Assembly (NCBI GenBank): GCA_002269645.1
Contig: NIVC01000197.1
Coordinates: 62,001 to 126,000, forward strand
Direction of reading: 5' to 3'
Source: Macrostomum lignano
Lineage: Eukaryota
DNA: 64,000 bases
The notes under the pieces are model-generated. The model was not told the origin of the DNA. It did no database searches and saw only the letters and a list, made by a program, of their open reading frames with translations. This document shows positions 4,870 through 47,991 of the stretch, one piece after another. Both the position numbers and the translations under genes were made by a program. The first letter of the stretch is position 1; each line of letters begins with the position of its first letter.

Positions 4870-7800
4870 ATGTCACTGTTTATTTTCTCTTTCTATTTTT
4901 TATGTTTAGTATGTTTTGGGCTATATATATTTACACGCAAAACAAACACTCCACCAGAAGGCAGTAATGATGCAGAATTCGTTTCATTTCGAAATTCATA
5001 TCTTATTGTTTACACTCTTGGAATGGGTAAGTATAGTTTCAGCATTTTAATTTTTTGCTTCATGAGTCTTGATACTGCAGCATTGACTAGAGTAGTGACT
5101 TATAAAATAATTGCTAAACTAGTATACTAATTATATTATTTATATTAGGTCAATTTTATTTTATGATTGTAAGCTACTCTAGTCAATTTAAGAATATATA
5201 AATATATAATCATGCAAAAGCCTTGCTGGGTAACTAGTTTAAATATTAAAGTTAATTTCTGTTAACCTAGTCCATAGGATATCAATTGCAACATCATATG
5301 CTTATAAATGCTTTTCTTAAATTGTGTGTATCTTTTTCATACATTTGTAAAGTAGCTTATATGCTTTTGGATGAATTATTAGACTTAAGTGGCAATCCTA
5401 CACTTCCGTTCGGTAAATTATTTTGACATTGAATTTTGAACAGGCGTGGTAAATAACAATGTAACCAAACAAAACTAAAACAGTGGAACATGGTAGCAGT
5501 CTGTTAGAGCACATAGTCACTTAGAGTGTGTCTGCAGGTCATTAAGGTGTCTACAATGGATAGTAATGTCCAATCCAGTACAGGATAGCCCCAAATGGAC
5601 ATTGGGGATACAGACGACGCCAGAGAAATTCCTCAATGTGTGCGTCAAAGAGAGCGTCGCTCGTGCCATGCATGTTGCGGATCTTGCGCTTCACGTGGGC
5701 CCATGTGCCCTCCACGGTGTTGGTGTAGACATGTCTCCATGGCAATGAAGACTGGAAGATATGAGAAATTGAAGCTCAATAAAACAAGCAGCTCACAAGC
5801 AACAGCTCCCTTAAACTGACACCCCTTTAAACTCTGTTCGCTCAAACTTTTGGCCATAGACACATTGCCAATCGACGTCATTTGACTCGGTGGTACGAAT
5901 TCAAATGTGAAAATAATTTACCGAACGGAGGTGTGGGATTGCCACTTAAGTATATATGTATTGTATCAAATTGTTAAATTAAATTATAGATTAAAAAATA
6001 GTTTGTATAAATGGGGAATCTTTAAATTATTTTTAGCAAATCTTTAAATTCAAGCATAGTTCTTGACTTAGCTAGAGGCTCTAGGCATCTAGATACAAGC
6101 AGAGAGGTGTCAACAAATATTCTGCTAACCCCTAGCAATATTTAGATACATGTATAATTTTTTTTATTTAACCCATAAGTTATATTAGTTTATAATTCAA
6201 GTCTTAATTTTAATTTATATTTATAGCTACATAATCTTAGGTCAAACTGGTTTATGGCCACAATACCTTTTAGTTAAAAGAACCATTGCTGCTTTGACAA
6301 AGCAATTTTATAGAAAGCTTAGCAGACTTATAATTTATTAAAAGAATTATTCTTCAACATCCTCACACAGCTGGAGACTGGCTACAGGGTCCATATGTGT
6401 ACGCACTTTATGAGCACTATGGCATGTCCAAGCGAGACATTGAGTTCCTATTTGTGGCCGGATTTGGTGCCAGCATGCTGTTTGGCACCATAGTTGGCTC
6501 CATCGCTGACAAGTATGGCCGTCGGAAAAACTGCATCATCTATGGCATCGTCTATGGCCTGACCTGCATTACTAAACACTTCAATAACTTCTGGGTGCTG
6601 CTGATTGGCCGGTTGCTAGGCGGCACAGCAACCAGTATACTGTGGAGCGGGTTCGAGTCCTGGCTAGTTCACGAGCATCATAGCAGAGGCTACAGCGAGC
6701 ACCAATTAGAGGAGACATTTAATCTGGCCATCTTCTTCAACAGCATTGGCGCCATAGCCAGCGGTTTGGTGTCCCAGTACGCCGTGGACTGGTTCGGCTT
6801 CGTTGCCCCCTTCGACTGCGCCCTGCTGGTGCTGCTGGCCATGGCTGCCATCGCCTGGCTGCGCTGGCCAGAGAATTATGGCGACTCCGGTGCTCAACTC
6901 GGGGCCAACTTCGCTGCTGCATGGAATGCGGTGCGCACTGACCGCAAAGTGCTCAGCTTGGGCATCACTCAGGCCATGTTCGAGGGCAGCATGTACTGCT
7001 TTGTGCTGGAGTGGACCCCGGCCTTGACTCCAGAGAAGCTCAGTGAGTTGCGGCTGCGATGCCGTGTCGTGTTCGGTTGGTGCTAAAAATAAGCTCAGAC
7101 AGAGCTGCCAAAATCCCATGTAGTTTAACAAAGTTCAGCTAGTTATGCAGAGAAGTTCAGGTATTACTGCAAAGAATTGCGGCAGGTGCTGCAAAGAAAC
7201 TCAGGTAGTTGCTGCAAAGAATCTCAGGTAGTTGCTGCAAAGAATCTCAGGTAGTTGCTGCAAAGAATCTCAGGTAGTTGCTGCAAAGAATCTCAGGTAG
7301 TTGCTGCAAAGAATCTCAGGTAGTTGCTGCAAAGAATCTCAGGTAGTTGCTGCAAAGAATCTCAGGTAGTTGCTGCAAAGAATCTCAGGTAGTTGCTGCA
7401 AAGAATCTCAGGTAGTTGCTGCAAAGAATCTCAGGTAGTTGCTGCAAAGAATCTCAGGTATTTGCTGCAAAGAATCTCAGGTAGTTGCTGCAAAGAATCT
7501 CAGGTAGTTGCTGCAAAGAATCTCAGGTAGTTGCTGCAAAGAATCTCAGGTATTTGCTGCAAAGAATCTCAGGTAGTTGCTGCAAAGAATCTCAGGTATT
7601 TGCTGCAAAGAATCTCAGGTAGTTGCTGCAAAGAATCTCAGGTAGTTGCTGCAAAGAATCTCAGGTAGTTGCTGCAAAGAATCTCAGGTAGTTGCTGCAA
7701 AGAATCTCAGGTATTTGCTGCAAAGAATCTCAGGTAGTTGCTGCAAAGAATCTCAGGTAGTTGCTGCAAAGAATCTCAGGTAGTTGCTGCAAAGAATCTC

Positions 7801-10800
7801 AGGTATTTGCTGCAAAGAATCTCAGGTAGTTGCTGCAAAGAATCTCAGGTAGTTGCTGCAAAGAATCTCAGGTAGTTGCTGCAAAGAATCTCAGGTAGTT
7901 GCTGCAAAGAATCTCAGGTAGTTGCTGCAAAGAATCTCAGGTAGTTGCTGCAAAGAATCTCAGGTAGTTGCTGCAAAGAATCTCATGTAGTTGCTGCAAA
8001 GAATCTCAGGTAGTTGCTGCAAAGAATCTCAGGTAGTTGCTGCAAAGAATCTCAGGTAGTTGCTGCAAAGAATCTCAGGTAGTTGCTGCAAAGAATCTCA
8101 GGTAGAGCCGCATGAAAATTCGGGCAGTGCTACAAGAAAGTTCAGGCAGCGCCACAAATAAGTTCAGCTACAAAGAGAAGCTCTAAACCCTCCGCAGTGC
8201 CCTCCGTAGCGGCCGGCCATGCTGGCAGGTATTTGCTGCAAAGAATCTCAGGTAGTTGCTGCAAAGAATCTCAGGTAGTTGCTGCAAAGAATCTCAGGTA
8301 GTTGCTGCAAAGAATCTCAGGTAGTTGCTGCAAAGAATCTCAGGTATTTGCTGCAAAGAATCTCAGGTAGTTGCTGCAAAGAATCTCAGGTAGTTGCTGC
8401 AAAGAATCTCAGGTAGTTGCTGCAAAGAATCTCAGGTAGTTGCTGCAAAGAATCTCAGGTATTTGCTGCAAAGAATCTCAGGTAGTTGCTGCAAAGAATC
8501 TCAGGTAGTTGCTGCAAAGAATCTCAGGTAGTTGCTGCAAAGAATCTCAGGTAGTTGCTGCAAAGAATCTCAGGTAGTTGCTGCAAAGAATCTCAGGTAG
8601 TTGCTGCAAAGAATCTCAGGTAGTTGCTGCAAAGAATCTCATGTAGTTGCTGCAAAGAATCTCAGGTAGTTGCTGCAAAGAATCTCAGGTAGTTGCTGCA
8701 AAGAATCTCAGGTAGTTGCTGCAAAGAATCTCAGGTAGTTGCTGCAAAGAATCTCAGGTAGTTGCTGCAAAGAATCTCAGGTAGAGCCGCATGAAAATTC
8801 GGGCAGTGCTACAAGAAAGTTCAGGCAGCGCCACAAATAAGTTCAGCTACAAAGAGAAGCTCTAAACCCTCCGCAGTGCCCTCCGTAGCGGCCGGCCATG
8901 CTGGCAGGATCCCGCACGGCTACATCTTCGCGGCCTACATGGTGAGCATGATGATCGGCAGTCAGCTCTACAGCCTGTGCTCAGCCCAGGCCAGGCCCGA
9001 GAGCTTCATGCGCTGGGTGTTCGCCGTCAGCGCTCTGTGCTTCGCATTGCCGGCTTGGAAGAAAACCGACGCCCTGATCCCGGCCACCTTCGGCGGCTTC
9101 TTGGCGTTCGAGGCCTGCATTGGACTGTTCTGGCCGGCCATTGGCACCATGCGGGGCCGCTACGTGCCGGATGCTAGTGAGCCGGGGGCTCGGAGTGTTT
9201 TCAGCTTTTTTAGCACTCAATTCTCAGCTCCCAAACTCCGGAATTCCGGATAAGCAGGCGGCTACGCAAGCAAGGAAACGCAAAGCCTTCGACGATATCG
9301 TCCCCGCAACCAGCACTGAGGCAATTCTGCCCATTCTGCTGACTCCTGAGCACAATACAGGCGCGGTGTGAATGACACGACAAGCCCTCAGGTTAATTTT
9401 CGTGCACATCGAACCAAAGGTCGTGGGGCAATGGTCAGACACGTTTGCCGCTGCTGTATATGGCGTAATTGGCGTTAATCCAAGAAATCTTTCTGGCCAG
9501 AAAATGTCAGCTCAAACGCATTCCAGCTTATCTGATAGATTTTTCTCTCTAAGCCTTAATTAGTGAAGAACTCGCCCAGTTTCTATGGCTATGTAAAAGC
9601 AGATAAATTCTTATCTTGCTATTGCGTTTTAATGCGACATTTTCATAGCTTTGAACTTTCAGACTCTGCTGCTATTGCTACGTGGAACAAGCAGTCACGC
9701 CATGATGAAAAAAATAAGAAAACAAGAAACATTTATATGCATAAAATTCAAATTTTCTAACTCGGTAGTGCATAAGAGTATAGGAGGAGGGACAGCCCAG
9801 GGGTATAGCAACACTGGTTCGATTCCATGCACGGTCCCATTCATTCGGAGATGCACGAAAATTAGCTTGATGGCTTGTCGTGCGATTCCCGCCCATGGGG
9901 GCCAACCCCCAAGGCACAGAGAGTGAACAAGCCTGACGATTAGAAAGTCAGGGCTGCTGTACACCCTGTGTGAGTCTACTCAGAGGTCAGCGGAATAGGC
10001 ATGAATGCTTGCACCTTCGCTGATTGCGAGCCCACTGCCACCCCTTTGAAACAGCCACCCCACTCTCGCCCCTTTAAAACAACCACCTACTCCCGCTATT
10101 CAAAACAACCACCCCACTCCCGCTATTCAAAACAACCACCCACTCCCGCTATTCAAAACAACCACCCACTCCCGCTATATAAAACAACCACCCCACTCAC
10201 TCCTTTTAAACAACCACCCTACTCTCGCTCTTTAAAACAACCACCCCACTCACTCCTTTTAAACAGCCACCCCACTCTCGCTCTTTAAAACAACCACCCT
10301 ACTCACTCCTTTTAAACAACCACCCCACTCACTCCTTTTAAACAACCACCCCACTCTCGCTCTTTAAAACAACCACCCCACTCACTCCTTTTAAACAACC
10401 ACCCCACTCTCGCTCTTTAAAACAACCACCCCACTCACTCCTTTTAAACAACCACCCCACTCTCGCCTCTTTACAACAACTATCCCACTCCCGCTCTTTA
10501 AAACAGCCACCCCACTCACGCTCTTTAAAACAACCACCCACTCTAACTCCTTTTAAACAACCACCCTACTCTCGCCCCTTTAAAACAGCCACCCCACTCT
10601 CGCTCTTTAAAACAACCACCACCCACTCGCTCTTTAAAACAACCACCCCACTCTCACTCCTTTTAAACAACCACCCCACTCTCGCTATATAAAACAGCCA
10701 CCCCACTCCCGCTATATAAAACAGCCACCCCACTCCCGCTATATAAAACAGCCACGCCACTCCCGCTCTATAAAACAGCCACCTTACTCCCGCCCCTTTA

Positions 10801-12207
10801 AAACAGCCACCCCACTCTCTTTAAAAAAACCACCACCCACTCTCGCTCTTTAAAATAGCCACCCTACTCTCGCTCTTAAAAACAACCACCACCCACTCTC
10901 GCTCTTTAAAATAGCCACCACACTCTCGCTCTTTAAAACAACCAACCCACTCTCGCTCTTTAAAACAACCACCCCACTCTCACTCCTTTTAAACAACCAC
11001 CCAACTCTCGCCCCTTTAAAACAGCCACCCCACTCCCGCTCTGTAAAACAGCCACCCACTCTTATTCTCACCCTACTTTTATTTCTCTTTTTTTCTTTTA
11101 GCCCGAGCCACAGTCATGAACTTTTTTCGCGTACCGCTCAATCTGATTGTTGTGGTCATATTGACCCAGAACTTCCCGCTCGCTCTAATCTTCAAGTGCT
11201 GCACTGGTTTTATGTTTATTGCGTTTGTGACGCAAGTCTATCTGAATCGGTGAGTTGCGCTGTGCTGTTTTTTCATTGTGTTTTGATCCGTTTTACTAGC
11301 CTTTCGCCTCTTGTTGGTCGGGGGAGTGAACTAAGGTAGGCAGCTGCTGGTAGAGTGGGTGAAGCGGTTTTTTCTGCTAGAAAACTTTTACTAGGATTTG
11401 CTCAAACGATAGCATGCAAACGCGGTGCATTGAGTTTTTCCATTTTTAAAGCATTATCCTTGCAACCGGAAGAGCCCAGACTAATGACATTTACATACCG
11501 CTTTTCTCCTTCCAACTCAATCGATCCAAGCGCTCCTGGGATAAAAAAATTGCGCCTGTCGGTGGTCTGATTGACAGTAAAAATACTCCATTCTGTGCGT
11601 TTTCTAAATCAAGTGCCGGTTTGGGCTATTTGAAAAGCTGAACTTACTGAATTATTGAACTCACTAAGCTGTCCAATGCACCTGGTCCGAGATTGCAGCT
11701 GCTGTGCTGTCTCTGGTGGCACTATTGTTTTCCCAATCACGTAGTTAAATAGTGTATCTTGCGGTGGCAGAGCAGCTCAGCGGGGTGCACGCCGTCTGAC
11801 TCTTGCACCATATCTGATAGTTAACCTTTCCGTGCGCGGGTTTGTGCTCGAAAATTGGCCAAGGCGGTTTGTCGTGCGATTCCAAGTTCTATGTTCTAGG
11901 ATGAGAAAGTCAGGTCCGCTGTGCACCCTGTATGATCGTGTTCCTGGAGTAGTGTATTTCACGGGTGGCTTAGCAGTTCTCTTTTTAAATGTAAATTTAT
12001 GTGTTTAATTATTTTAACTTGCCCGCGCCTTTTTCTGTTCGCAGCATAACCAAATGCCAGGATTTGCAACATTTGAACGAGTTGCAAAAGCAGCAACAGC
12101 AGCAGGAGCAGGAGGAGTGGCGCACATCTGTTCTCGATTCCCCAGCTGAATCTGAGTCTGCTGAGCAGGAATCAGAAAAATACTCATCTCCTGAGCTCGC
12201 AGCCTAA
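4870..12207 (+). CDS. MFSD5: MFSD5-like molybdate-anion/MFS transporter, join(4870..5026,6371..7042,8877..9176,11102..11249,12045..12207), 479 aa
   Basis: Family motifs AGDWLQGPYVYALY (across exon 1/2), FESWLV, FEGSMYCFVLEWTP, IPHGYIFAAYM and RATVMNFFRVPLN. All four introns are GT-AG with matching phases; total 1440 nt. Confidence 0.92.
5391..5943 (-). mobile_element. Non-autonomous Merlin (IS1595/IS1016-like) DNA transposon, 553 bp, in MFSD5 intron 1
   Basis: About 45-bp TIRs (GGCAATCCTACACTTCCGTTCGGTAAATTATTTT... / ...AAAATAATTTACCGAACGGAGGTGTGGGATTGCC); 8-bp TSD ACTTAAGT at 5383-5390 and 5944-5951; internal ORF 5551-5745(-) with YTNTVEGTWAHVKR...GTSDALFDAHIEEFLWRR, typical of the IS1595/Merlin transposase C-terminus. 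Confidence 0.9.
7195..8783 (+). repeat. 23-bp minisatellite (CTCAGGTAGTTGCTGCAAAGAAT) in two arrays (about 7195-8104 and 8229-8783) in MFSD5 intron 2
   Basis: Near-perfect tandem repeat with degenerate copies at both edges. Confidence 0.97.
8105..8228 (+). other. Duplicate copy of the MFSD5 intron-2 3' end plus the first 31 nt of exon 3 (8198-8228)
   Basis: Identical to 8784-8907 (offset 679 bp); includes the acceptor CCGCAG (AG at 8196-8197) and is followed by GTATTT. Confidence 0.93.
9330..10035. mobile_element. Dispersed SINE-like repeat family: inverted partial copy at about 9330-9420, copy at about 9785-10035; further copy at about 11760-11960
   Basis: Shared TTGTCGTGCGATTCC...AGAAAGTCAGG...TG(T/C)ACCCTGT blocks; 9378-9410 is the reverse complement of 9850-9885; B-box-like GGTTCGATTCC near 9817. 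Confidence 0.5.
10040..11060. repeat. About 26-bp A/C-rich minisatellite (AAAACAACCACCCCACTCTCGCTCTTT-like) in MFSD5 intron 3
   Basis: Degenerate tandem repeat ending about 40 nt before the exon-4 acceptor. Confidence 0.9.
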
Positions 12208-12348
12208 TGTGGACTCTACCTTTTTTGCCTTCTCTATTTGAATTTTGCTTCCAATTTCTTGTCTTTTGCAAAGCAAAATTGGATTCTTCTTGCCAAATAT
12301 CGGAGATTGCGGTTGAGTCGTCGGAGTTAGCTTCATGATCAGTCCGTA

Positions 12349-12801
12349 TCACAGATGCTAGAATAACTAGATGGGCCACTCAGCACATTTGCATGTAAGC
12401 TACTTTCTGTTCAGTAGTAAGTTGAACAGAGGCATTTTAATTTATTTTTCAAGCCAATGCTCACTTATTAACTCTCACCCCTCCCAGCTTAAACCCTCCA
12501 ACCAGCTCCTTTCCACACTACCCCCCGCCCCAACCCAATTTTTATTGCCTTTCTCTCGGAATTCCAGCCTGAAGCTGCCATGTACATTTCAGTGGACTGG
12601 CTAATGTACATTATTGCTGAACCAATTAGCAAGTTATTTACGCCTGCAAGCTTGGGCTTCTAAACTTATCAAAGTAATTTCAGCTGCCTTTATTTTTATA
12701 AAATAGCTTATGTATTCTTCTTTGCTACTGAACTGAAAGTAGAATGCTGTTTTTTAAAGTATATATGCCTGAGTGCTCATCTATTTATTTTAGAATCTGT
12801 G
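12349..12801. mobile_element. About 450-bp MITE-like dispersed repeat with imperfect TIRs; other copies at about 38430-38850 (inverted) and about 41205-41640
   Basis: Three highly similar copies in the window; TIRs CACAGATGCTAGAATAACTAGATG...CTACTTTCTGTTCAGTAG versus CTACTGAACTGAAAGTAG...CATCTATTTATTTTAGAATCTGTG. Confidence 0.8.
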
Positions 12802-13342
12802 GTTCGAATCTTTCGCACTTGTCTACTGCTTATCAGGGATGCTAGAAAATGTACTTGGAGAGCTGTTGATTTCGACTTTTTAGTTTAACTGAGGAAAAGC
12901 TTTTGCAATGTTTTTTTAGTGAAATGTTCTTGCTTTTAATTTTTAGCGTATTGATAATAAAAAATAATGATAATAATATAAAGAATAGTATTAACTTTTG
13001 ATTTGTTTATGCAGAACGATTTTTCCGTTAACTCGGTTTGACAATAAATATTTTATTCGCTGTTATCCTAATATTATTTTATCGGAATTTTGACTCGATA
13101 ATTCGGCAAAGATACTTCGGGAACTGAAGGATTATGTTTAATAAAAGTACTTATTACAATGTAAGTACTTGTTTGTACCTATTTTCTTAGTTTATTAATC
13201 AGTAATGTTCTGTAGGTTAAATTGCTTAGCGGAAAAAATTACATGTACGCTCGTAGGGGGTCTGTTTCTACTGCAAGTAGCGTCCTTTGCGCCTGCAACT
13301 TGTCTTAAATTTCTGGAATTTATCAAGCATAATTTAAAATTG

Positions 13343-13505
13343 CACTACTACTACTACTACTACTACTACTACCGGTACTACTACTGCTACTACCCCACTG
13401 CTACTACTACTACTACTGCTACTACTACTACTACTACTACTACCGGTACTACTACTGCTACTACCCCACTGCTACTACTACTACTACTGCTACTACTACT
13501 CACTA
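13343..13505. repeat. (CTA)n/(CTG) trinucleotide microsatellite
   Basis: Direct inspection. Confidence 0.9.
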
Positions 13506-13519
13506 CTCAGATCCATGAG

Positions 13520-13820
13520 ATTTGCCCGCAGTGCAATTTGCCCGCGAGCGAGTTGCCCGCGGATTCTTTTCCCGCCGAGGTTTGCCCGCAGTGCTTTTTT
13601 ACTGCAGATTTTGTCTGCATTGTCTTCCCAATGCTTATTACATGTAATAAATCTTAGTAAAGAGATTTACACGATCAAAACTTTTTGATAGTAACTGCAT
13701 ATCAAATGCATATTTTTTGGGGGGCCGGGCAATGCAGACAATCTAGCTGCCAAATGCGCTGCAGTAAAAAAGCACTGCGGGCAAATCTCGGCGGGCAATT
13801 ATCGGCGGGCATTTCTCGTG
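13520..13820. mobile_element. Foldback MITE-like element with TTGCCCGC subterminal repeats
   Basis: CGAGGTTTGCCCGCAGTGCTTTTTTACTGCAG (left) is complementary to CTGCAGTAAAAAAGCACTGCGGGCAAATCTCG (right). Confidence 0.65.
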
Positions 13821-14364
13821 CTCCCTCACTACTCGGTAAATTTCAATTATCTTTACAGCTGAATATCGCAGGTATTGAGGCCAATTGGCAAATCGTTTAA
13901 GCTCGTAGTTCTGTTGACAAGCCAGAGCTGGGGCTCGAATCGTTTATTTTATTGCATGCCGGATGTGATTTACGGGCAGGTGGCGCCGCGTGTTTAGCTC
14001 AAAATCGGATTATTTTCCCAATAAATACATGTCTGCAAGGTACCTTTAGTCTTTGTTCAAGCCTAATGACCTGGTAGATAAGCAATTATTTTCTCTGTCT
14101 GGCCTGGCTCTGCTCAATGAAGTTGAGCAAATCTGCTGAGCAATTAGTCCTGTGTGCATTCGCTTCATTTATTTCATCCTTGGCTCACTTTGCGCTCAGG
14201 CGGACAAGTACATGTAATAAGCCTGCCATTTATAGAATGTTAGCCAGCTAATTAGCTGCTCGATTCAATGCAAACAGTTCGATACAGGAAGATCCACACA
14301 CAAGCAGTGCCGTTTTCTATGGGAAGCACTCTTTATAGTCTTGATTTAGGGATTTGTTTCTTAT

Positions 14365-15270
14365 AGTCTGTTTTACAGTCATTTTTACTGTTTTTTCTAC
14401 AGTCTTTTCTACAATCCGTTTTAGACTCTTTTCTACAGTCTCTGTAGTCTGTTTTACAGTCTGTTCTACAGTCTGTTCTGGAGTCTGTTCTACAGTCTGT
14501 TCTGGAGTCTGTTCTAGAGTCTGTTCTACAGTCTGTTCTACAGTCTGTTCTACAGTCTGTTCTACAGTCTGTTCTTCAGTCTGTTCTACAGTCTGTTCTA
14601 CAGTCTGTTCTACAGTCTGTTCTACAGTCTGTTCTACGGTCTGTTCTACAGTCTGTTCTACAGTCTGTTCTACAGTGTGTTCTACAGTCTGTTCTTCAGT
14701 CTGTTCTACAGTCTGTTCTACGGTCTGTTCTACAGTCTATATCAACATGAAGTATTATTTGAGTTGCCGATGCATTTCGTCCATTTGCATTAGGACATCG
14801 TCAGGGTCTTTTTATTTAAGAAACGAAATGGACGAAATGCGTCGGCAACTCAAATAATACTTCATGTTGATATTTACCTTTATTTATCTACTCTTCATCA
14901 AGCGAGCCACTTTACCTGTTCTACAGTCTGTTCTACAGTCTGTTCTAGAGTCTGTTCTAAAGTCTGTTCTACAGTCTGTTCTACAGTCTGTTCTACAGTC
15001 TGTTCTACAGTCTGTTCTTCAGTCTGTTCTACAGTCTGTTCTTCAGTCTGTTCTACAGTCTGTTCTACAGTCTGTTCTACAGTCTGTTCTTCAGTCTGTT
15101 CTACAGTCTGTTCTACAGTCTGTTCTACAGTCTGTTCTACAGTCTGTTCTACAGTCTGTTCTACAGTCTGTTCTACAGTCTGTTCTACAGTCTTTTCTAG
15201 AGTCTGTTCTTCAGTCTGTTCTACAGTCTGTTCTACAGTCTTCCACATAGTGTAATCTTTTCTACAGTCT
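14365..15270 (+). repeat. 12-bp minisatellite (TCTGTTCTACAG)n, interrupted at 14739-14905
   Basis: Direct tandem repeat. Confidence 0.95.
14739..14873. other. 135-bp palindrome with 48-bp arms (MITE or hairpin RNA)
   Basis: ATATCAACATGAAGTATTATTTGAGTTGCCGATGCATTTCGTCCATTT pairs with the distal arm; the single mismatch is a G-U wobble. Confidence 0.85.
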
Positions 15271-15545: not shown

Positions 15546-18500
15546 ATGGCGGAGTTCCGAGAGGCTCGGAAGCTGAGCTTCTACATGTTCGGCTGCGCGG
15601 GCACAGCCATCTGCTGCCTGGGCGTGCTGGCCAACTGCCTCTCCCTGGTAGTGCTGTCTAAAAAGTCCATGCGGAGCAGCAGCACCAATCTGTACCTGAT
15701 GGCACTGTCGGTGGCCGACACCATGGTGCTGCTCATGTCGCTGCTCACCTTCCTGAAGGACACTCGCCCGGAATTTGATCAGCCCGAGTACCTGGTCTGG
15801 CGGGACTCGACCTGGCTGCCGCATGTCTATATTTATTCGCACGCGTTGAACCTCATGTTTCAGGTGCGAATTTGGGCCTGGTTTGCAGCGTTTCAGTGCA
15901 GTTTATGGTTTGGTTTACTGTCTGACTGTCTGGTTTACAGGTTGGTTTATGGTCTGGTTTACTGTCTGACCGTCTGGTTTACAGGTTGGTTTATAGTCTG
16001 GTTTACTGTCTGACTGTCTGGTTCACAGGTTGGTTTATGGTCTGGCTTAGTGTCTGACTTGTCTGGTTTACAGGTTGGTTTATAGTCTGGTTTACTGTCT
16101 GACTGTCTGGTTTACAGGTTGGTTTATGGTCTGGTTTACTGTCTGACTGTCTGGTTTACAGGTTGGTTTATGGTCTGGTTTACTGTCTGACTTGTCTGGT
16201 TTACAGGTTGGTTTATGGTCTGGTTTACTGTCTGACCGTCTGGTTTACAGGTTGGTTTATAGTCTGGTTTACTGTCTGACTGTCTGGTTCACAGGTTGGT
16301 TTATGGTCTGGCTTAGTGTCTGACTTGTCTGGTTTACAGGTTGGTTTATAGTCTGGTTTACTGTCTGACTGTCTGGTTTACAGGTTGGTTTATGGTCTGG
16401 TTTACTGTCTGACTGTCTGGTTTACAGGTTGGTTTATGGTCTGGTTTACTGTCTGACTTGTCTGGTTTACAGGTTGGTTTATGGTCTGGTTTACTGTCTG
16501 ACCGTCTGGTTTACAGGTTGGTTTATAGTCTGGTTTACTGTCTGACTGTCTGGTTCACAGGTTGGTTTATGGTCTGGCTTACTGTCTGACTTGTCTGGTT
16601 TACAGGTTGGTTTATAGTCTGGTTTGCAGGTTGGTTTATAGTCTGGTTTACAGGTTGGTTTATAGTCTGGTTTACTGTCTGACTTATCTGGTTTACAGGT
16701 TGGTTTATGGTCTGGTTTACTGTCTGACTGTCTGGTTTACAGGTTGGTTTATGGTCTGGTTTACTGTCTGACTTGTCTGGTTTACAGGTTGGTTTATGGT
16801 CTGGTTTACTGTCTGACCGTCTGGTTTACAGGTTGGTTTATAGTCTGGTTTACTGTCTGACTGTCTGGTTCACAGGTTGGTTTATGGTCTGGCTTACTGT
16901 CTGACTTGTCTGGTTTACAGGTTGGTTTATAGTCTGGTTTGCAGGTTGGTTTATAGTCTGGTTTACAGGTTGGTTTATAGTCTGGTTTACTGTCTGACTT
17001 ATCTGGTTTACAGGTTGGTTTATGGTCTGGTTTACTGTCTGACTGTCTGATTTACAGGTTGGTTTATGGTCTGGTTTACTGCTTTGTTTAAAGTCTAGTA
17101 ATAAAGTCATAAAGGCCCCCAAGAGACAGGGGCACCCACCAAGAGACAGGGGTGCCCACCAAGAGACAGGGGTTGCCCACCAAGATACAGGGGTGCCCAC
17201 CAAGAGACAGGGGTTGCCCACCAAGAGACAGGGGTGCCCACCAAGAGACAGGGGTGCCCACCAAGAGACAGGGGCGCCCACCAAGAGACAGGGGCGCCCA
17301 CCAAGAGACAGGGGCGCCCACCAAGAGACAGGGGCGCCCACCAAAAGACAGTGGCGCCCTCCAAGAGACAGGGGCGCTCACCATAGAGACAGGGGCGCCC
17401 ACCATGAGACAGTGGCGCCCTCCAAGAGACAGGGGCGCCCACCATGAGACAGGGGCGCTCACCAAGAGACAGTGGCACCCTCCAAGAGACAGGGGCGCTC
17501 ACCATGAGACAGTGGCGCCCTCCAAGAGACAGGCTTTTATTCTGGTGAAAAAATGTTATTTTACCATTCAGTTGGAAAATAATAGCTACTTTTTCCTATA
17601 ATTAATAAAATTATTGAGTCTACAGTCTACCCTCGGGCGAATGAGGCATCAAGGCTATAAAACTTCGATGTGTACTTTCCACTATGACTGATGATGGGCC
17701 AGTCTCAGCTCAGACCAAGAATTTTTTTATCCATTTGTCTCCGAGAAAATTGCATTATTTTTATTGCAAAGCCACTTCGTGACTGAAACTATAACTAAAT
17801 TTGGAATCTCGGGATTTTGCAATCGTAGCAAAAAGAAACTGCATGGTTCCCCTTGGCTACCGGCCTTTCGTATCTCCATCCCATTTCAGTATCGCCCCAG
17901 CTTTCAGCTTCTTTCTCTGTGTGTGTTCTCTGCACCAGTCTCTCTGTGCATGCTCTATCTGATAATGTCCCTCTGAATCGCTTCCACTTTTTATAGCTAT
18001 TTCACTTCCTTTTTTACTTGTGTGTACCACCGTCTTATGGGCCATCTGTCTGTGAGTAGTTCCATCTCACTTCATCGCCGTTCTTTCTCTTTTCCGCTTT
18101 CCCTCTCACCCTCTCTCCCTCTCTCCCTGTCTCCCTGTCTCCCTCTCTCCCTCTCTCCCTCTCACCCTCTCTCCCTCTCTCCCTCTCTCCCTCACTCCCT
18201 CTCTCCCTGTCTCCCTCACTCCCTCTCTCCCTCTCTCCCTCTCTCTCTCTCCCTCTCTCCCTCTCTCCCTCTCTCCCTCTCACCCTCTCAGCCTCTCTCC
18301 CTCTCTCCCTCTCTCCCTCTCTCCCTCTCTCCCTCTCACCCTCTCTCCCTCTCTTCCTCTCACCCTCTCTCCCTCTCACTCTCTCTCCCTCTCTCCCTCT
18401 CTCCCTCTCACTCTCTCTCCCTCTCACCTTTTCTCCCTCTCTCCCTCTCTCCCTCTCTCCCTCTCTCCTTCTCTCCCTCTCTCCCTCTCTCCCTCTCTCC

Positions 18501-23519: not shown

Positions 23520-24645
23520 ATATGAGAATGATATGAGAATGATATGAGAATGATACGAGAGTGATATGAGAATGATATGAGAATGATATTAGAATAATAC
23601 GAAAATGATATGAGACTGATATGAGAATGATATGAGAATGATATGAGAATGATATGAGACTGATATGAGAATGATATGAGACTGATATGCGAATGATATG
23701 AGAGTGATATGAGAATGATATGAGAATGATATGAGAATGATATGAGAGTGATATGAGAATGATATGAGAGTGATATGAGAATTATATGAGAATGATATGA
23801 GAATGATATGAGAGTGATATGAGAATGATATGAGACTGATATGAGAATTATATGAGAATGGTACTAGAATTATATGAGAATGATATGAGAATGATATGAG
23901 ACTGATATGAGAATGATATGAGAGTGATATGAGAATGATATGAGAATGATATGAGAATGATATGAGAGTGATATGAGAATGATATGAGAGTGATATGAGA
24001 ATTATATGAGAATGATATGAGAATGATATGAGAGTGATATGAGAATGATATGAGACTGATATGAGAATTATATGAGAATGGTACTAGAATTATATGAGAA
24101 TGATATGAGAATGATATGAGACTGATATGAGAATGATATGAGAGTGATATGAGAATGATATGAGAATGATATGAGAATGATATGAGAGTGATATGAGAAT
24201 GATATGAGAGTGATATGAGAATTATATGAGAATGATGTGAGAATGATATGAGAGTGATATGAGAATGATATGAGACTGATATGAGAATTATATGAGAATG
24301 GTACTAGAATTATATGAGAATGATATGAGAATGATATGAGACTGATATGAGAATGATATGAGAGTGATATGAGAATGATATGAGAATGATATGAGAATGA
24401 TATGAGAGTGATATGAGAATGATATGAGAGTGATATGAGAATTATATGAGAATGATATGAGAATGATATGAGAGTGATATGAGAATGATATGAGAGTGAT
24501 ATGAGAATGATATGAGAGTGATATGAGAATTATATGAGAATGATATGAGAATGATATGAGAGTGATATGAGAATGATATGAGAATGATATGAGAATGATA
24601 TGAGAATGATATGAGACTGATATGAGAATGATATGAGAATGATAC
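23520..24645. repeat. 11-bp satellite (GATATGAGAAT) with 220-bp higher-order repeat
   Basis: Variant GTACTAGAAT at 23861, 24081 and 24301. Confidence 0.95.
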
Positions 24646-27682: not shown

Positions 27683-28846
27683 TTTGTGCTGTTGTTGCCT
27701 GTAGATTGTCTTGTTGCTTGTGCTGTTGTTGCCTGTAGATTGTCTTGTTGCTTGTGCTGTTGTTGCCTGTAGATTGTCTTGTTGCTTGTGCTGTTGTTGC
27801 CTGTAGATTGTCTTGTTGTTTTTGCTGTTGTTGCCTGTAGATTGTCTTGTTGGTTGTGCTGTTGTTGCCTGTAGATTGTCTTGTTGCTTGTGCTGTTGTT
27901 GCCTGTAGATTGTCTTGTTGCTTGTGCTGTTGTTGCCTGTAGATTGTCTTGTTGGTTGTGCTGTTGTTGCCTGTAGATTGTCTTGTTGGTTGTGCTGTTG
28001 TTGCCTGTAGATTGTCTTGTTGGTTGTACTGTTGTTGCCTGTAGATTGTCTTGTTGTTTTTGCTGTTGTTGCCTGTAGATTGTCTTGTTGTTTTTGCTGT
28101 TGTTGCCTGTAGATTGTCTTGTTGGTTGTGCTGTTGTTGCCTGTAGATTGTCTTGTTGGTTGTGCTGTTGTTGTTTGTAGATTGTCTTGTTGGTTGTACT
28201 GTTGTTGCCTGTAGATTGTCTTGTTGATTGTGCTGTTGTTGCCTGTAGATTGTCTTGTTGGTTGTGCTGTTGTTGCCTGTAGATTGTCTTGTTGGTTGTG
28301 CTGTTGTTGCCTGTAGATTGTCTTGTTTCTTGTGCTGTTGTTGCCTGTAGATTGTCTTGTTGATTGTGCTGTTGTTGCCTGTAGATTGTCTTGTTGGTTG
28401 TGCTGTTGTTGCCTGTAAATTGTCTTGTTGGTTGTGCTGTTGTTGCCTGTAGATTGTCTTGTTGGTTGTGCTGTTGTTGCCTGTAGATTGTCTTGTTGGT
28501 TGTGCTGTTGTTGCCTGTAGATTGTCTTGTTGGTTGTACTGTTGTTGCCTGTAGATTGTCTTGTTGATTGTGCTGTTGTTGCCTGTAGATTGTCTTGTTG
28601 GTTGTGCTGTTGTTGCCTGTAGATTGTCTTGTTGGTTGTGCTGTTGTTGCCTGTAGATTGTCTTGTTTCTTGTGCTGTTGTTGCCTGTAGATTGTCTTGT
28701 TGATTGTGCTGTTGTTGCCTGTAGATTGTCTTGTTGGTTGTGCTGTTGTTGCCTGTAAATTGTCTTGTTGGTTGTGCTGTTGTTGCCTGTAGATTGTCTT
28801 GTTGGTTGTGCTGTTGTTGCCTGTAGATTGTCTTGTTGGTTGTGCT
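27683..28846. repeat. 34-bp minisatellite (TGCTGTTGTTGCCTGTAGATTGTCTTGTTGGTTG)
   Basis: Direct tandem repeat, about 34 copies. Confidence 0.96.
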
Positions 28847-30280
28847 TGTTGATTTTTTATATCTGGAGTCTTATTGTTGGCGGTGTGCCATGAGCAACAT
28901 GTGGGAGGTATACATTGTCTGGATTTGAATGGCTCTACAGGTAGAAGTCTGGGTTATGTATAAACTACGCTCGTAGACGCTTCGAAGGCGTACTCATATT
29001 TTGAGGAAATTGCAATTGCCGCGCCCAGTGCAGAACGAAAAATGGGATTATAGAGAAGTCAATAAAGTGTTATTGTCATGCGATCTTAAGCTTCTTTATT
29101 ATCTTCAGGAAAGGCAAGCTTTCTGCTTTTTGTCAAGCAAGCTGGAATCAGTGCCTGAGAACTTTCCATACCTATTGCTTTCTGCCTAGCTGAGAGCCTG
29201 GCCGTTCATGTCGGGAAAGGAATTCAAACTTGGCAAGTTTTCCCCATTCTGTCTCTTGTCTGCAGTCAGCTCCTCCTCAGCGCGGGGGCTGAGGGGGGGG
29301 GAGGCCACGAAATTCTCCCCGATCCTCAAGCAGTATACGCCAGTTCCGATCCGGGAGCTTAATTTATTGATCGGAAAAGTCGCCCACTCTCCCGCTTTGA
29401 GCAGTCTCGGGAATCGGTCCTCTGGGGGTGAGTTCACTGCAGTTGTCACATGATCTCACAGACACACCAAGCACTGCTGCGATCTCATTTTGGATTGTTT
29501 CAAAGCTCAACAGCAACTTTAAGCAGCAATAATCCAGTCTGATTGAAACAAAACTCTTTATCGATAGCTAAATTGTTTAAATGGCAACAGAAAAAAAGCA
29601 GATTGCATTGTGGCTAGTTTGTATTTCAATATGGAAGCCCCCGATAGTCAATTTATACACAATATTTGGCTGTTTCAAGCAAAATATTACGAGTTTATGG
29701 AAGGTAGGCACAGTGCTGCAGTATTTCCATGGTGAGGCATTCATTAGGCTTTTCAACTTGAAAAAATGCACAAAAATCGCAGGCTCCACAGTCACTGGCA
29801 CTTTGCAGCACCTGAACTCAGACATGGGAAGGATGTTGCCATAGCAACTGTCTGGGTAATTAGCATGGCTAAAAAAGTAAATCATAGGCAATAAATCTGA
29901 TTGGCATAAATTTAATAAGGCAGGTGTGTAATCAGCAAAGCACTGATTTCTTGGCAAGGCACTTAATTAGAAATTAGGTCAAAACTAGTCTGGAAAATAT
30001 CGGGCATGGATAGATTGGGTTGGTTAATTCAAGCTGCATAGAAGTAGCCATAAAGGTAGCTGGTATTGCAAGACCGATCACGACAAAAATTCAGTAAAAT
30101 GGCATTTCAGGGCAAAGTATTACATTCAGACAATCGTGTTTTTATCTTAACAATCGTTGGCCGAATCTCTGGAATCCCAGTGTGTTTGTGTCTCTGTACA
30201 TTGGGAGATATGCAAGCAGCAGTTCGTAGCAGTCTTCGTCACTTGATGATTTACGACGCGGAGCCAGAGGCAGTCTGCAA

Positions 30281-34492: not shown

Positions 34493-35309
34493 ACAACAAT
34501 TTAGTAAAATTGGCTCTTAGTCAAAAGAAATAAATCCCTTACCTTTATGGGCCCCTTTGGCAAAATTCTGGAACAGGAAAGGTTTCGTCAGCCAAACTGC
34601 ACAAACACGCAATGGAATGAACTAAATATTAGTGAGGACAATTATATGGCTAAGCCAATGGCCTCTGCTCACTCCCCTTACTACACTCACTCCTGGGTTG
34701 AGCAGACTGTGAAATATTCTCCACTTGGGAAGCAACCAGAGAAACAAAGTATTGGCTTAGCTGGGAGGCGAGTTTCCACCGAAGGTGTACACACGGGGCG
34801 CAGGTGCGGGATCAGCCAGTATTGAGCGGAGCGAGAGAGTTGGGTTATTCCTCCTGCTCCTCTAGTTGAACTTGAATCGATTGATCGGCTTTCAGTCGCT
34901 CGAGTTAGAAACTCTGCAGCTTTGCTGTCCGACTGTACATGCGCGCCATTGAATTCCTGGGGCCAGCCAGACAGGCGCAATCTCTCTCTCGCTGTGTAGA
35001 AACTGAGAGTAGACAGACTGCAGCAAAAATCGATAAAATTTTAAGCGTCAATAGGCGACACTGTTTGATTCTCAAATCCGGCAGTTTGCCCCGCTGCCCC
35101 CGCTAAATTCTGTATTTTCGCTGGAATTTAACTTACTATTTTTAATCTTCCTTTCACTGTGTATAGTAAGTGCGTGTGTACACACTTACCTGGCTTCCAA
35201 CCTGCTGACTGTTGAGTACCGCTTCTCAAAACCTCTGTTGTATGAAATTCATGGGCCAAGATTCATGCCACACAAAGACTTGAATTTCACATCACATAAA
35301 TTTCAATTC

Positions 35310-36355
35310 ACATCTTATGAAGATTTGGTTTGTGTCAAATTCAGATCTCATGAAGATTTGGCGCTATCAAATTGAGATCTCATGAAGATTTGGCGCTGTC
35401 AAATTCAGATCTCATGAAGATTTTGCGCTGTCAAATTCAGATCTCATGAAGATTTGGCGCTGTCAAATTCAGATCTCATGAAGATTTGGCGCTGTCAAAT
35501 TCAGATCTCATGAAGATTTTGCGCTGTCAAATTCAGATCTCATGAAGATTTTGCGCTGTCAAATTCAGATCTCATGAAGATTTGGCGCTGTCAAATTCAG
35601 ATCTCATGAAGATTTGGCGCTGTCAAATTCAAATCTCATGAAGATTTGGTTTGTGTCAAATTCAGATCTCATGAAGATTTTGCGCTGTCAAATTCAGATC
35701 TCATGAAGATTTGGCGCTGTCAAATTCAAATCTCATGAAGATTTGGCGCTGTCAAATTCAGATCTCATGAAGATTTGGCGCTGTCAAATTCAGATCTCAT
35801 GAAGATTTTGCGCTGTCAAATTCAGATCTCATGAAGATTTTGCGCTGTCAAATTCAGATCTCATGAAGATTTGGCGCTGTCAAATTCAGATCTCATGAAG
35901 ATTTGGTTTGTGTCAAATTCAGATCTCATGAAGATTTGGTTTGTGTCAAATTCAGATCTCATGAAGATTTGGTTTGTGTCAAATTCAGATCTCATGAAGA
36001 TTTTGCGCTGTCAAATTCAGATCTCATGAAGATTTTGCGCTGTCAAATTCAGATCTCATGAAGATTTGGCGCTGTCAAATTCAGATCTCATGAAGATTTG
36101 GCGCTGTCAAATTCAGATCTCATGAAGATTTTGCGCTGTCAAATTCAGATCTCATGAAGATTTGGCGCTGTCAAATTCAAATCTCATGAAGATTTGGCGC
36201 TGTCAAATTCAGATCTCATGAAGATTTGGCGCTGTCAAATTCAGATCTCATGAAGATTTTGCGCTGTCAAATTCAGATCTCATGAAGATTTGGCGCCGTC
36301 AAATTCAGATCTCATGAAGATTTGGCGCTGTCAAATTCAGATCTCATGAAGATTT
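35310..36355. repeat. 32-bp minisatellite (TGTCAAATTCAGATCTCATGAAGATTTGGCGC)
   Basis: Direct tandem repeat. Confidence 0.96.
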
Positions 36356-45834: not shown

Positions 45835-46720
45835 ATTTAGGGTTTGTGAAGGTTAGGGTTTGTGAAGGTTAGGGTTTGTGAAGGTTAGGGTTTGTGAAGG
45901 TTAGGGTTTGTGAAGGTTAGGGTTTGTGAAGGTTAGGGTTTGTGAAGGTTAGGGTTTGTGAATTTTAGGGTTTGTGAAGGTTAGGGTTTGTGAAGGTTAG
46001 GGTTTGTGAATTTTAGGGTTTGTGAAGGTTAGGGTTTGTGAAGGTTAGGGTTTGTGAAGGTTAGGGTTTGTGAATTTTAGGGTTTGTGAAGGTTAGGGTT
46101 TGTGAAGGTTAGGGTTTGTGAAGATTGGGGTTCGTGAAGATTGGGGTTTGTGAGGTTTATGGATTGTGAAGATTGGGGTTTGTGAGGTTTAGGGATTGTG
46201 AAGATTGGAGTTTATGAGGTTTAGGGTTTGTGAATATTGGGGTTTGTGAGGTTTAGGGTTTGTGAAGATTGGGGTTTATGAGGTTTAGGGATTGTGAAGA
46301 TTGGGGTTTGTGAGGTTTAGGGATTGTGAAGATTGAGTTTATGAGGTTTAGGGTTTGTGAATATTGGGGTTTGTGAGGTTTAGGGTTTGTGAAGATTGGG
46401 GTTTGTGAGGTTTAGGGATTGTGAAGATTGGAGTTTATGAGGTTTAGGGTTTGTGAATATTGGGGTTTGTGAGGTTTAGGGTTTGTGAAGATTGGGGTTT
46501 ATGAGGTTTATGGTTTGTGAAGATTGGGGTTCGTGAAGATTGGGGTTTGTGAGGTTTAGGGTTTGTGAAGATTGGGGTTTGTGAAGATTGGGTTTGTGAA
46601 GATTGGGGTTTGTGAAGATTGGGGTTTGTGAAGATTGGGATTTGTGAAGATTGGGGTTTGTGAAGATTCGGGTTTGTGAAGATTGGGGTTTGTGAAGATT
46701 GGGGTTTGTGAAGGTTAGGA
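45835..46720 (+). repeat. 16-bp telomere-like minisatellite (GGTTAGGGTTTGTGAA) grading into GATTGGGGTTTGTGAA variants
   Basis: Direct tandem repeat. Confidence 0.93.
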
Positions 46721-47991
46721 TTTGTGATAGAGATGGCACCAAGAACTAACCTGCATGCATAGGGCTCATGATTTGCACTGCATCTGCAGCTGGTATTAAT
46801 ATATTTATTCTAAATCGAGCCATTATTTAGTTAGCCAGTATTTATCGAGCCATTATTTGCGAATAATGCGTATTCACTGCATAGGGCAATCTGTACGAGT
46901 GACCATACTAAATATATTGTTCACGAATAGCTATAGATATGCAGAGCTGCAGTTGGAATTCTATATGAATTTGCTATTTTTAACAACTGGTCAAGCTTAC
47001 AGATAAATGTATCTTTTAGCTGTCCTTATATGTACTAGGATGCATCAGCTGTGCCCTCAGTGTGACAGGCAATTTATATCCAGCATTCATCTGTATTGAT
47101 TTCCTATCGAGGTCTCCGCGCGCCCAGAAATTAAGCAGCTTTCAGCTGATCACGGGTTGCTGTTTTTGCGCAGCAGGATAAAAAATTGATGCCTGTGTAC
47201 AAAGTGCAGAAACCAGCGCGTGATGCAACAAAGTGGTACAGGAAACTAAACGTTTCTGGAAAAACTTTTAGGAGGCAGGTCTTAATGGAAAATACATTAC
47301 GGAGAATCTAGAGGTTCTCATTTTTTATTTTTGACCTGTTACACATTTTGTTACACAGTTATTAAAGCTAGCTACAGAATGATAAAATAGATTCATAAAA
47401 CCATATGAGTTGAGCCGTACCATTTTTGTGATTTTTAGACAAGACTATTAACACCAACATCTCATTAACAGACTATTGAAATATTGTCAACAGACCTTCT
47501 GACCTTCACACGCGCAGCAGCAGCTATCAGATACTTAGATAGTTGCATGTAATCTTGCACCAGATCGCATTAGTCACATGGACAACCAGATGAAAGAAAC
47601 CCACCGACTCGTTCAAGGACAGCTAAATGTCTGAATACTATATATAGTGCACACTTGGCCTGCACTGATGCTTGAACTTGTATCCAGATTACGATTTCGT
47701 CAGCTTTGCTCTCGCTTTCTTCTATAAAGAGTGTCTGGATGGCGAGCGCGTCCCAGAAGTCGTACAAAAGTTTTTTTTATTGATTAGTCTGTCGCCGAAG
47801 GACTGCAACAGTTGGATTTCTTTCTACAGAAAATAACACATTTCATAGAATTCCCACGGATTATGAAGCACTTGGTTATCATCATGTATCGAATTATTTC
47901 TTAAAGGGCTGTGCGTATCGTTTACGTACTGATGTACTGTGTCCTAAACTCAAAAGTTATTGATTTGTTTCCTTAAAAACCTGCTTTCTAG

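Follow-up and report, generated by a model that had tools for sequence, protein, structure and literature searches.

Tandem duplication is an established proposal for how introns are gained (Hellsten 2011, PMC3265369; Ma 2016, PMC4974935), and a locus of the flatworm Macrostomum lignano raises the question of whether such an event has provided a gene with a new intron, with a frame-shifting pseudo-exon or with a lesion. The window that we analysed comprises 64,000 nucleotides (positions 62,001 to 126,000) of contig NIVC01000197.1 in the DV1 assembly Mlig_3_7 (GCA_002269645.1); a comparison over 22,207 nt gave 100% identity to this contig. All coordinates given here are those of the window. The host gene is the MFSD5-like Mlig024926 (BOX15_Mlig024926g1; annotated CDS range 4870-12207). 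In line with the original prediction, its product belongs to the MFSD5/MOT2 molybdate-anion transporter family, as judged from a match of residues 3-360 to Pfam MFS_5 (PF05631; E 1.4e-125) and from the name molybdate-anion transporter carried by its homologues in a protein search. A hand-built exon model yielded a protein of 479 amino acids that is exactly the annotated one, and it comprises the following features:

4870..5026, + strand: exon 1 of Mlig024926, with the ATG at 4870; the hand model matches the annotated protein.
6371..7042, + strand: exon 2, with the Pfam MFS_5 match; the donor of intron 2, CA/GTGAGT, follows from 7043.
8875..8876, + strand: native acceptor AG of intron 2, placed by the annotated proteins and a 65% paralogue.
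8877..9176, + strand: exon 3, with internal AGs at 8887-8888 and 8906-8907 (the latter being the acceptor of path B, described below).
11102..11249, + strand: exon 4, from the hand model.
12045..12207, + strand: exon 5, the last coding exon, with the normal stop at 12205-12207 and a stop in the +31 frame at 12147.

The annotated protein of the duplicated paralogue and that of the unduplicated one both read EKL-M-PSVAAGHAGR where exons 2 and 3 meet, and the 65% paralogue has an intron in the same place and phase as intron 2 of Mlig024926.

It had been claimed that the end of intron 2 and the first 31 nt of exon 3 occur twice. This tandem duplication across the intron 2/exon 3 boundary proved to be genuine at every coordinate given for it, and it is composed of these elements:

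7179..8104, + strand: 23-bp minisatellite array 1, one degenerate unit plus 39 units with the consensus CAGGTAGTTGCTGCAAAGAATCT.
7593..8225, + strand: copy 1 of the duplicated segment (633 bp), which begins with the CAGG microhomology at 7593-7596 and consists of the marker-unit pattern followed by 124 nt of unique sequence.
8105..8228, + strand: proximal unique segment, the intron end plus the first 31 nt of exon 3, matching 8784-8907 at 124/124 positions.
Within 8105..8228, + strand: decoy acceptor AG at 8196-8197 and 31-nt pseudo-exon at 8198-8228, both defined by the identity with 8784-8907.
8226..8229, + strand: CAGG of the duplication junction, where GT 8229-8230 forms the donor-like site CAG/GTATTT.
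8226..8904, + strand: copy 2 of the duplicated segment (679 bp), with array 2 (24 units, 8226-8777), the unique intron end and the start of exon 3.

The two unique segments are free of point differences, and the identity at an offset of 679 is unbroken from 7987 to 8229. The 23-mer was matched 63 times (39 plus 24 units), where none would be expected by chance. When units were coded as T (the GTATTT variant) or M (the CATGTA variant), the order in array 1 from 7593 was T aaaa T aaa T aaaaaaa M aaaa, and that in array 2 from 8226 was T aaaa T aaaa T aaaaaaa M aaaaa. Array 2 thus repeats the marker units of the 3′ part of array 1 with zero point substitutions and exactly two one-unit differences, which is the number originally predicted. 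The predicted microhomology was also found: CAGG is present at 7593-7596, 8226-8229 and 8905-8908, with differing flanking bases and no filler. A random junction would have at least 4 nt of microhomology with a chance of ~1.5%, by hand calculation. The locus therefore shows a head-to-tail intragenic duplication with an identifiable source (copies 7593-8225 and 8226-8904), and few shared junction bases without long homology, as is typical of microhomology-mediated tandem duplication; its junction k-mer is GGCCATGCTGGCAGGTATTTGCTGC. Homologous unequal crossover was rejected as the origin, since the exon and the satellite have only 4 nt in common at the junction. A dispersed repeat family was likewise rejected as the source of the 23-mer, which occurs nowhere else in the window and is absent from the homologous intron of the 65% paralogue.

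Supporting the view that the duplication is a derived event, the paralogous contig NIVC01000606.1 (Mlig030788) contains one array and one 124-nt segment with the same marker order. As this contig holds the undisturbed single-copy site, the duplication is derived and specific to the Mlig024926 copy, the relative that sets the polarity being a paralogous contig. The ancestral unit, taken from NIVC01000606.1, measures 656 bp; two slippages of one unit each have left the present copies at 633 and 679 bp. The proposed history is that a segment of ~656 bp was copied head to tail via the 4-nt CAGG shared by exon 3 and a variant satellite unit. The copied segment would have included the 3′ 23 minisatellite units, the last 92 unique intron bases with the branch region and the acceptor, and the first 31 bases of exon 3; later slippage would have removed one 23-bp unit from one copy and added one to the other. 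Intron 2 would thereby have been lengthened from ~1.13 kb to 1.83 kb.

The two genes are otherwise extremely close. Exon 2 differs from that of the paralogue by 2 substitutions in 672 nt, at 6402 and 6633, exon 3 by none, and the only two differences in the paralogous protein fall in its C-terminal tail. The Mlig024926 copy is marked by 6402C, 6633C and the QQQQQ variant of exon 5, an exon with an A/T difference and a 3-nt indel between the copies. The discriminating SNPs closest to the junction are found 409 nt upstream of it, in exon 2, and ~470 nt downstream of it, in exon 5. In the unique DNA between ~7455 and 11500, the window and the paralogue show no substitutions; dating by substitutions was rejected for this reason, and the identity of the two copies is silent on their age relative to the genome duplication.

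Conceivably, DV1 has a single copy of 8105-8228, and the duplication arose when three near-identical subgenome copies were assembled with Canu or polished with Pilon. Mlig_3_7, within which alone the duplication was verified, is known to have paralogous regions that are collapsed or expanded, with copy number misrepresented in places, and it was polished with Illumina and RNA-seq reads. Moreover, the locus is repeat-rich and locally identical to its paralogue, and there are zero point differences between the two copies. However, a mis-placed overlap expands an array only: it could not duplicate 124 nt of unique sequence, nor create, from within the array, a junction between exon and satellite that are non-homologous save for 4 nt. 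The copies are also set apart by two differences in unit number, and over ~550 bp they preserve the ancestral order of markers, an order that is resolvable by long reads only and that short-read polishing is unable to rebuild. The assembly was built with Canu from ~130x PacBio reads, and there are no Ns or gaps at the locus. We therefore regard an artefact as quite unlikely. The reading that we favour, and consider probable, is that the duplication is young, real and microhomology-mediated, that it affects one subgenome copy, and that it constitutes raw material for an intron gain of the kind described in the potato RdRp gene rather than a demonstrated gain.

What a genuine duplication would mean for splicing depends on the choice of sites. 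The original prediction named three paths, and direct computation showed its arithmetic to be correct. Path A joins the end of exon 2 at 7042 to 8877 and gives the normal 479-aa protein. In path B, exon 2 is joined to the proximal acceptor and 8229-8907 is removed, a potential GT...AG excision that takes out the redundant copy in frame and gives the same 479-aa protein. Path C joins 8198-8228 to 8877 (junction CATGCTGGCAG/TGCCCTCCGTAG, computed), and the resulting +31-nt frameshift stays open through exons 3 and 4 up to the stop at 12147. While these three paths exist, their count does not hold. AG 8196-8197 and GT 8229-8230 are located as predicted, but the latter is not new sequence: it belongs to one of 64 equivalent CAG/GTA sites in intron 2, and there are consequently far more than three paths. 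The choice amounts to ~24 donors by 3 acceptors. It includes an in-frame +54-nt product (junction for +54 and longer insertions AAGAATCTCAG/TGCCCTCCG, computed), and some donor choices (+77, +123 nt or more) stop early. Use of the proximal acceptor with retention gives AGAAGCTCA/TGCCC...GGCAGGTATTTGC (computed), and read-through past the decoy acceptor reaches a stop at 8299. Upstream of the two acceptors, over 600 nt of sequence are identical; transcription reaches the proximal acceptor first, and many U1-capable sites come after it. This stands as a counter-point to any preference for the distal acceptor.

Path A would nevertheless be the main source of productive mRNA, since the native acceptor alone precedes a full 300-nt exon with a GTGAG donor. 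The duplication would have placed a perfect decoy acceptor inside intron 2, followed by the 31-nt pseudo-exon and 24 donor-like CAG/GTA sites. Some transcripts probably take this decoy, giving mostly +31 and other out-of-frame or intron-retaining products, as the array donors pair with the native acceptor and not with the exonic CAG. The donor-like sites of the array read GTAGTT or GTATTT, with U1 duplex energies comparable to those of real donors. Array units were also considered as recursive splice sites (ratchet points) and rejected: they read aaagaatctcag/GTAGTT with a pyrimidine tract of 53%, and +4 and +5 depart from (Yn)CAG/GTAAGT.

In principle, to judge from the sequence, the duplication could create a new intron, and a nascent gain would consist of path B itself: splicing of exon 2 to the proximal acceptor and excision of the 679-nt 8229-8907 via the minisatellite donor, leaving a 31-nt micro-exon and an unchanged protein while the sister paralogue remains ancestral. 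In a variant, the in-frame +54-nt product would add 18 residues to the loop encoded by the 31 nt. The exact arithmetic by which the proteins of paths A and B coincide is consistent with this, as are the normal annotated protein and the U1 duplex energy of CAG/GTATTT at the junction (-7.2 kcal/mol), which falls within the range of the gene's own donors (-4.6 to -12.2). Likewise, duplication created a working intron in one step, spliced with 6-16% efficiency, in the ATP2A2 test (PMC3265369). However, the junction donor lacks A+4 and G+5, which all real donors checked in two paralogous gene families have (7/7 GTRAG). A 31-nt exon, moreover, is smaller than the size usually defined efficiently. 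The acceptor is a further obstacle. Splicing normally takes the first AG that follows the branch point, and path B would bypass both the native AG at 8875-76 and a second one at 8887-88 in favour of a third, an exonic CAG 31 nt beyond the native site with 47% upstream pyrimidines vs 59%. Thus, by splice-site rules that are mammalian and not flatworm, path B is expected to be the rarest outcome. The mature mRNA is, as predicted, identical for paths A and B and hence unable to tell B from A. A nascent gain is in our view very improbable.

Neutrality or degeneration is no less likely an outcome than gain, because the genome contains at least one intact and locally near-identical paralogue; thanks to this paralogue, the lesion may be tolerated. 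Dominance of the proximal acceptor could make the gene a hypomorph or a pseudogene. In its strong form this would mean that the decoy takes most transcripts into frameshifted (+31, +77, +100 nt) or prematurely terminated products, and that a hypomorph sheltered by the other subgenome copies is becoming a pseudogene. The shared upstream sequence of the acceptors and the earlier synthesis of the proximal one are compatible with this, and so are the possible pseudo-exons of 31, 54, 77 nt etc. offered by the 24 sites after the decoy, the read-through stop and the redundant paralogues. Against it, the pseudo-exon is without a consensus donor, and the coding sequence is otherwise intact, with the difference from the paralogue confined to the C-terminal tail. 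In addition, an ML2-derived protein with the C-terminal variant of Mlig024926 has as its first codon the one that the normal junction of exons 2 and 3 divides, and this speaks weakly for normal joining. Majority use of the decoy appears unlikely. SL trans-splicing was rejected as the source of this MPSV-start protein, since the start codon requires the final A of exon 2, given what we take to be the 3′ end of the M. lignano spliced leader.

The annotation of Mlig024926 was RNA-seq-guided, but its normal gene model is not independent evidence, because any read of the exon-identical paralogue would be placed here and appear as path A. A protein search and cluster listing for M. lignano returned solely NCBI, UniRef and MetaClust entries, with no transcript-assembly (Logan) members for Mlig024926 or the 65% paralogue. 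Literature searches found no papers on the gene identifiers and no match for duplicated acceptors.

A real duplication would amount to nature's own version of the Hellsten minigene experiment: a duplicated gene and its unduplicated paralogue with an identical exon 3 would share one nucleus, in an animal amenable to transgenesis. Such a locus could show how the spliceosome handles two identical acceptors and a donor-like minisatellite unit closing a new intron, and it bears on how often tandem duplication yields introns vs broken genes. As things stand, it is one among many indels separating the M. lignano subgenomes. DV1 has three paralogous subgenomes that differ chiefly by indels (PMC10733133), and tandem repeats make up 15% of its genome. 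Mlig024926 fits this pattern in carrying another single-paralogue indel, in a genome whose paralogues are told apart mainly by indels and by the length of tandem repeats, but besides repeat units its indel takes in unique sequence and a functional splice signal.

The predicted birth of a poison exon finds a formal likeness in NMD-coupled cassette exons, in that a short intronic exon shifts the frame upon inclusion. While the +31 frameshift of path C was borne out, the designation as a poison exon was not: the stop at 12147 lies in the last exon, 58 nt ahead of the normal stop, so that path C is without the hallmark of an EJC-dependent NMD poison exon. Nor is the 31-nt element conserved or regulated, since it is absent from the paralogue on NIVC01000606.1. 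Duplication as a route to intron gain, the other part of that reading, agrees with the studies of Hellsten and Ma. The AGGT model of Rogers (1989), as realized in ATP2A2 (PMC3265369), is fitted exactly by path B, in which the GT after copy 1 is joined to the AG ending copy 2, one unit is taken out and the mRNA is restored. The classical model, however, duplicates exon only and has no stronger acceptor inside, whereas here the native acceptor lies 31 nt upstream of the required AG, and only the AG side (CAG/G) is duplicated exon, the GT coming from the satellite.

The closest known case is the boundary-crossing duplication in the potato RdRp gene. In each, the duplicated stretch runs from the 3′ part of the intron into the 5′ part of the exon after it. 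The branch site, pyrimidine tract and acceptor of the parental intron persist in the downstream copy, and a new intron would be completed by a donor situated close to where the upstream exonic piece ends; relatives without the duplication set the polarity. For the potato intron there are 106 RNA-seq junction reads and 53 WGS boundary reads, and ten differences separate its copies (PMC4974935), whereas the Mlig024926 duplication is known from the assembly alone and has no substitutions. The donor is a cryptic exonic GTAAG in potato but a minisatellite unit at the junction in Mlig024926, where the splice equivalent to that of potato is path C and breaks the frame.

The boundary between intron 2 and exon 3 of the MFSD5-like gene Mlig024926 is doubled in the window: positions 8105-8228 recur at 8784-8907 with 124 of 124 nt identical, exactly the bases named in the original prediction, and identity is unbroken across 7987-8229 at an offset of 679. 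The window showed no mismatches to NIVC01000197.1 (Mlig_3_7, GCA_002269645.1) over 22,207 nt, and its first base apparently corresponds to position 62,001 there. Our hand-built gene model was identical to the annotated BOX15_Mlig024926g1 (protein P0121) and comprises five exons that together encode 479 aa:

4870-5026, exon 1
6371-7042, exon 2
8877-9176, exon 3
11102-11249, exon 4
12045-12207, exon 5

This product gave a full Pfam MFS_5 match (E 1.4e-125); its top database matches came from Macrostomum lignano itself, and the next were molybdate-anion transporters (MFSD5) from many invertebrates, with ~53% identity. Two gene models from the older ML2 assembly differ: in P0002 translation continues across the intron 2 donor (…EKLSELRLRCRV) and the first part of exon 3 is then left out, and P0122 begins precisely with the codon that intron 2 interrupts. 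Evidently, the earlier-assembly models broke at the repeat-filled intron 2.

Intron 2 is occupied by a 23-bp minisatellite with the consensus CAGGTAGTTGCTGCAAAGAATCT, of which 63 unit matches were found versus 0 expected by chance (39 in array 1 and 24 in array 2). When the units were coded by variant (T, GTATTT; M, CATGTA), the arrays and the positions of a shared CAGG read as follows:

From 7593, array 1 unit order: T aaaa T aaa T aaaaaaa M aaaa
From 8226, array 2 unit order: T aaaa T aaaa T aaaaaaa M aaaaa
7593-7596, 8226-8229 and 8905-8908: CAGG

Since the order of marker units matches, array 2 and its 124-nt tail are a copy of 7593-8225, from which they differ by the two one-unit changes originally predicted and by no point changes. 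The bases around CAGG differ between the exon (GCTGG_CAGG_ATCC) and the satellite (ATCT_CAGG_TATT); the duplication junction is therefore a 4-nt microhomology without filler, as had been proposed. By hand calculation, a microhomology of at least 4 nt is expected at ~1.5% of random junctions. Repeats are common elsewhere too: tandem and simple repeats account for 15% of the M. lignano genome, and in agreement with this figure 20-35-bp minisatellites are very dense in the window (10044-11062 in intron 3, 15901-17081, 23520-24644, 27684-28851, 35305-36355, 52726-54083 and others), with array lengths that are unequal between the paralogous contigs. The window also holds a 2.8-kb, G-rich and C-free array of a 17-bp unit, GAGGTTTGGGAGTTTGG, at 47991-50839 (GC skew ~1.0 across 48001-50000), and a 16-mer array containing TTAGGG at 45837-46727.

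Mlig_3_7 is a Canu assembly of ~130x PacBio data from the inbred DV1 line, polished by Pilon with Illumina and RNA-seq reads, and its copy numbers are known to be wrong in some regions. We nevertheless regard an assembly artefact as an improbable source of the doubling: an overlap mis-placed inside the array can only lengthen the array, and offers no route to doubled unique sequence or to an exon-to-satellite junction. Moreover, copy 2 keeps the marker-unit order over 550 bp, which short-read polishing could not rebuild, the unit numbers of the two copies are unequal, and there are no gaps. An origin by microhomology-mediated tandem duplication, confined to one of the subgenome copies, is well supported.

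DV1 carries three paralogous subgenomes with ~2.2% SNP difference (1.1% in coding sequence), most differences being indels. The paralogous contig NIVC01000606.1 is colinear with the window, and its gene Mlig030788g1 encodes a 99% identical protein. At this site it has a single array (...T aaaa T aaa x T aaaaaaa M aaaa) and a single 124-nt segment, followed by exon 3. Judged by this site and its marker order, the single copy is ancestral and the duplication specific to the window's gene copy; the unit originally duplicated was 656 bp, and later slippage removed one unit from copy 1 (633 bp) and added one to copy 2 (679 bp). A 65% paralogue, Mlig006233g2 (NIVC01000440.1, 9163-9822), has a homologous intron that interrupts the same codon in the same phase, filled with a long CT-rich microsatellite in place of the 23-mer. 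The intron is therefore old and its repeat local, the 23-mer array having arisen after the split of the two MFSD5-like gene families. Another local difference lies in intron 1, where a ~575-bp element (5380-5954) with 78-nt terminal inverted repeats is missing from NIVC01000606.1; the alignments on its two sides share 8 bp, in keeping with a target-site duplication. The ORF inside the element (5551-5745, minus strand) has weak similarity to the C terminus of an ISXO2/IS1595-like (Merlin-type) transposase (E 7e-4, short of the Pfam cut-off).

No substitutions separate the two duplicate copies. This dates nothing, because the unique DNA of window ~7455-11500 and NIVC01000606.1 ~10940-14400 (~3.4-4 kb, taking in exon 3, intron 3 and exon 4) is also substitution-free, with flanks that differ by 1-3.6%. 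The tract looks like a recent gene conversion between subgenome copies, and the duplication lies within it and is most likely later. The two slippage events show that the duplication is not brand new.

The sequence upstream of the two exon 3 acceptors is identical for >600 nt. The proximal one (AG 8196-8197) is transcribed first, and the distal one (AG 8875-8876) alone precedes a full 300-nt exon with a GTGAG donor. We infer that the distal acceptor mostly wins. The normal annotated protein, although derived from a genome-guided StringTie/TACO transcriptome, is no test of this choice: exon 3 is the same in both paralogues, and the closest SNPs that tell their mRNAs apart lie 409 nt upstream and ~470 nt downstream, so reads from the intact paralogue would be assigned to this copy as 7042->8877. 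A hint of normal exon 2/3 joining in this copy comes from P0122, which has this copy's C-terminal variant and begins at the Met codon split across that junction.

The original prediction envisaged three splice paths, a single new donor and a possible poison exon. Joining 7042->8198-8228->8908 indeed gave exactly the normal protein upon computation, and 8198-8228->8877 added 31 nt as anticipated. Reading in the +31 frame, however, continues uninterrupted across exons 3 and 4 to a stop at 12147 in the last exon, 58 nt short of the normal one, with no exon junction thereafter and a barely longer 3′ UTR. Its predicted 470-aa product, scrambled from residue 287 on, thus lacks the classical NMD character of a poison exon. 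Nor is the junction donor unique: intron 2 contains 64 CAGGTA sites, and with ~24 donors and three AGs many more products are possible. For instance, donor 8251->acceptor 8877 would insert 54 nt (18 residues) in frame, and for donors past 8320 the stop at 8299 stays in frame. The CAGGTA sites have U1 pairing energies (-7.2 and -7.8 kcal/mol) inside the span of the donors that belong to the gene itself (-4.6 to -12.2), but they have neither the A+4 nor the G+5 present in 7/7 genuine donors from the two paralogous families. The path 7042->8198-8228->8908 would use an exonic CAG, the third AG, 31 nt beyond the native acceptor and preceded by a 47% pyrimidine tract. Splicing normally takes the first AG past the branch point as 3′ splice site, with exceptions only for AGs that lie very near the branch or no more than about 12 nt apart. 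As every donor in array 2 reaches the native acceptor first, this path should be the rarest outcome. Intron gain or poison-exon birth at this locus is possible, but unsupported and partly contradicted.

The general frame for this locus is the model of Rogers together with its test in ATP2A2, in which 6-16% of transcripts had a duplicated exon removed as an intron (PMC3265369). The nearest known case is potato RdRp, in which a tandem duplication over an intron-exon boundary yielded a new intron with inherited branch site, pyrimidine tract and acceptor and a cryptic donor from the upstream exon fragment, as confirmed with WGS and RNA-seq reads (PMC4974935). The architecture is the same in the flatworm, a candidate known from sequence, whereas an intron gain is defined by RNA evidence of the potato kind. 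Two features differ: the candidate flatworm donor is a minisatellite unit at the junction rather than a cryptic exonic site, and the potato-type splice would correspond to 8198-8228->8877, which breaks the frame.
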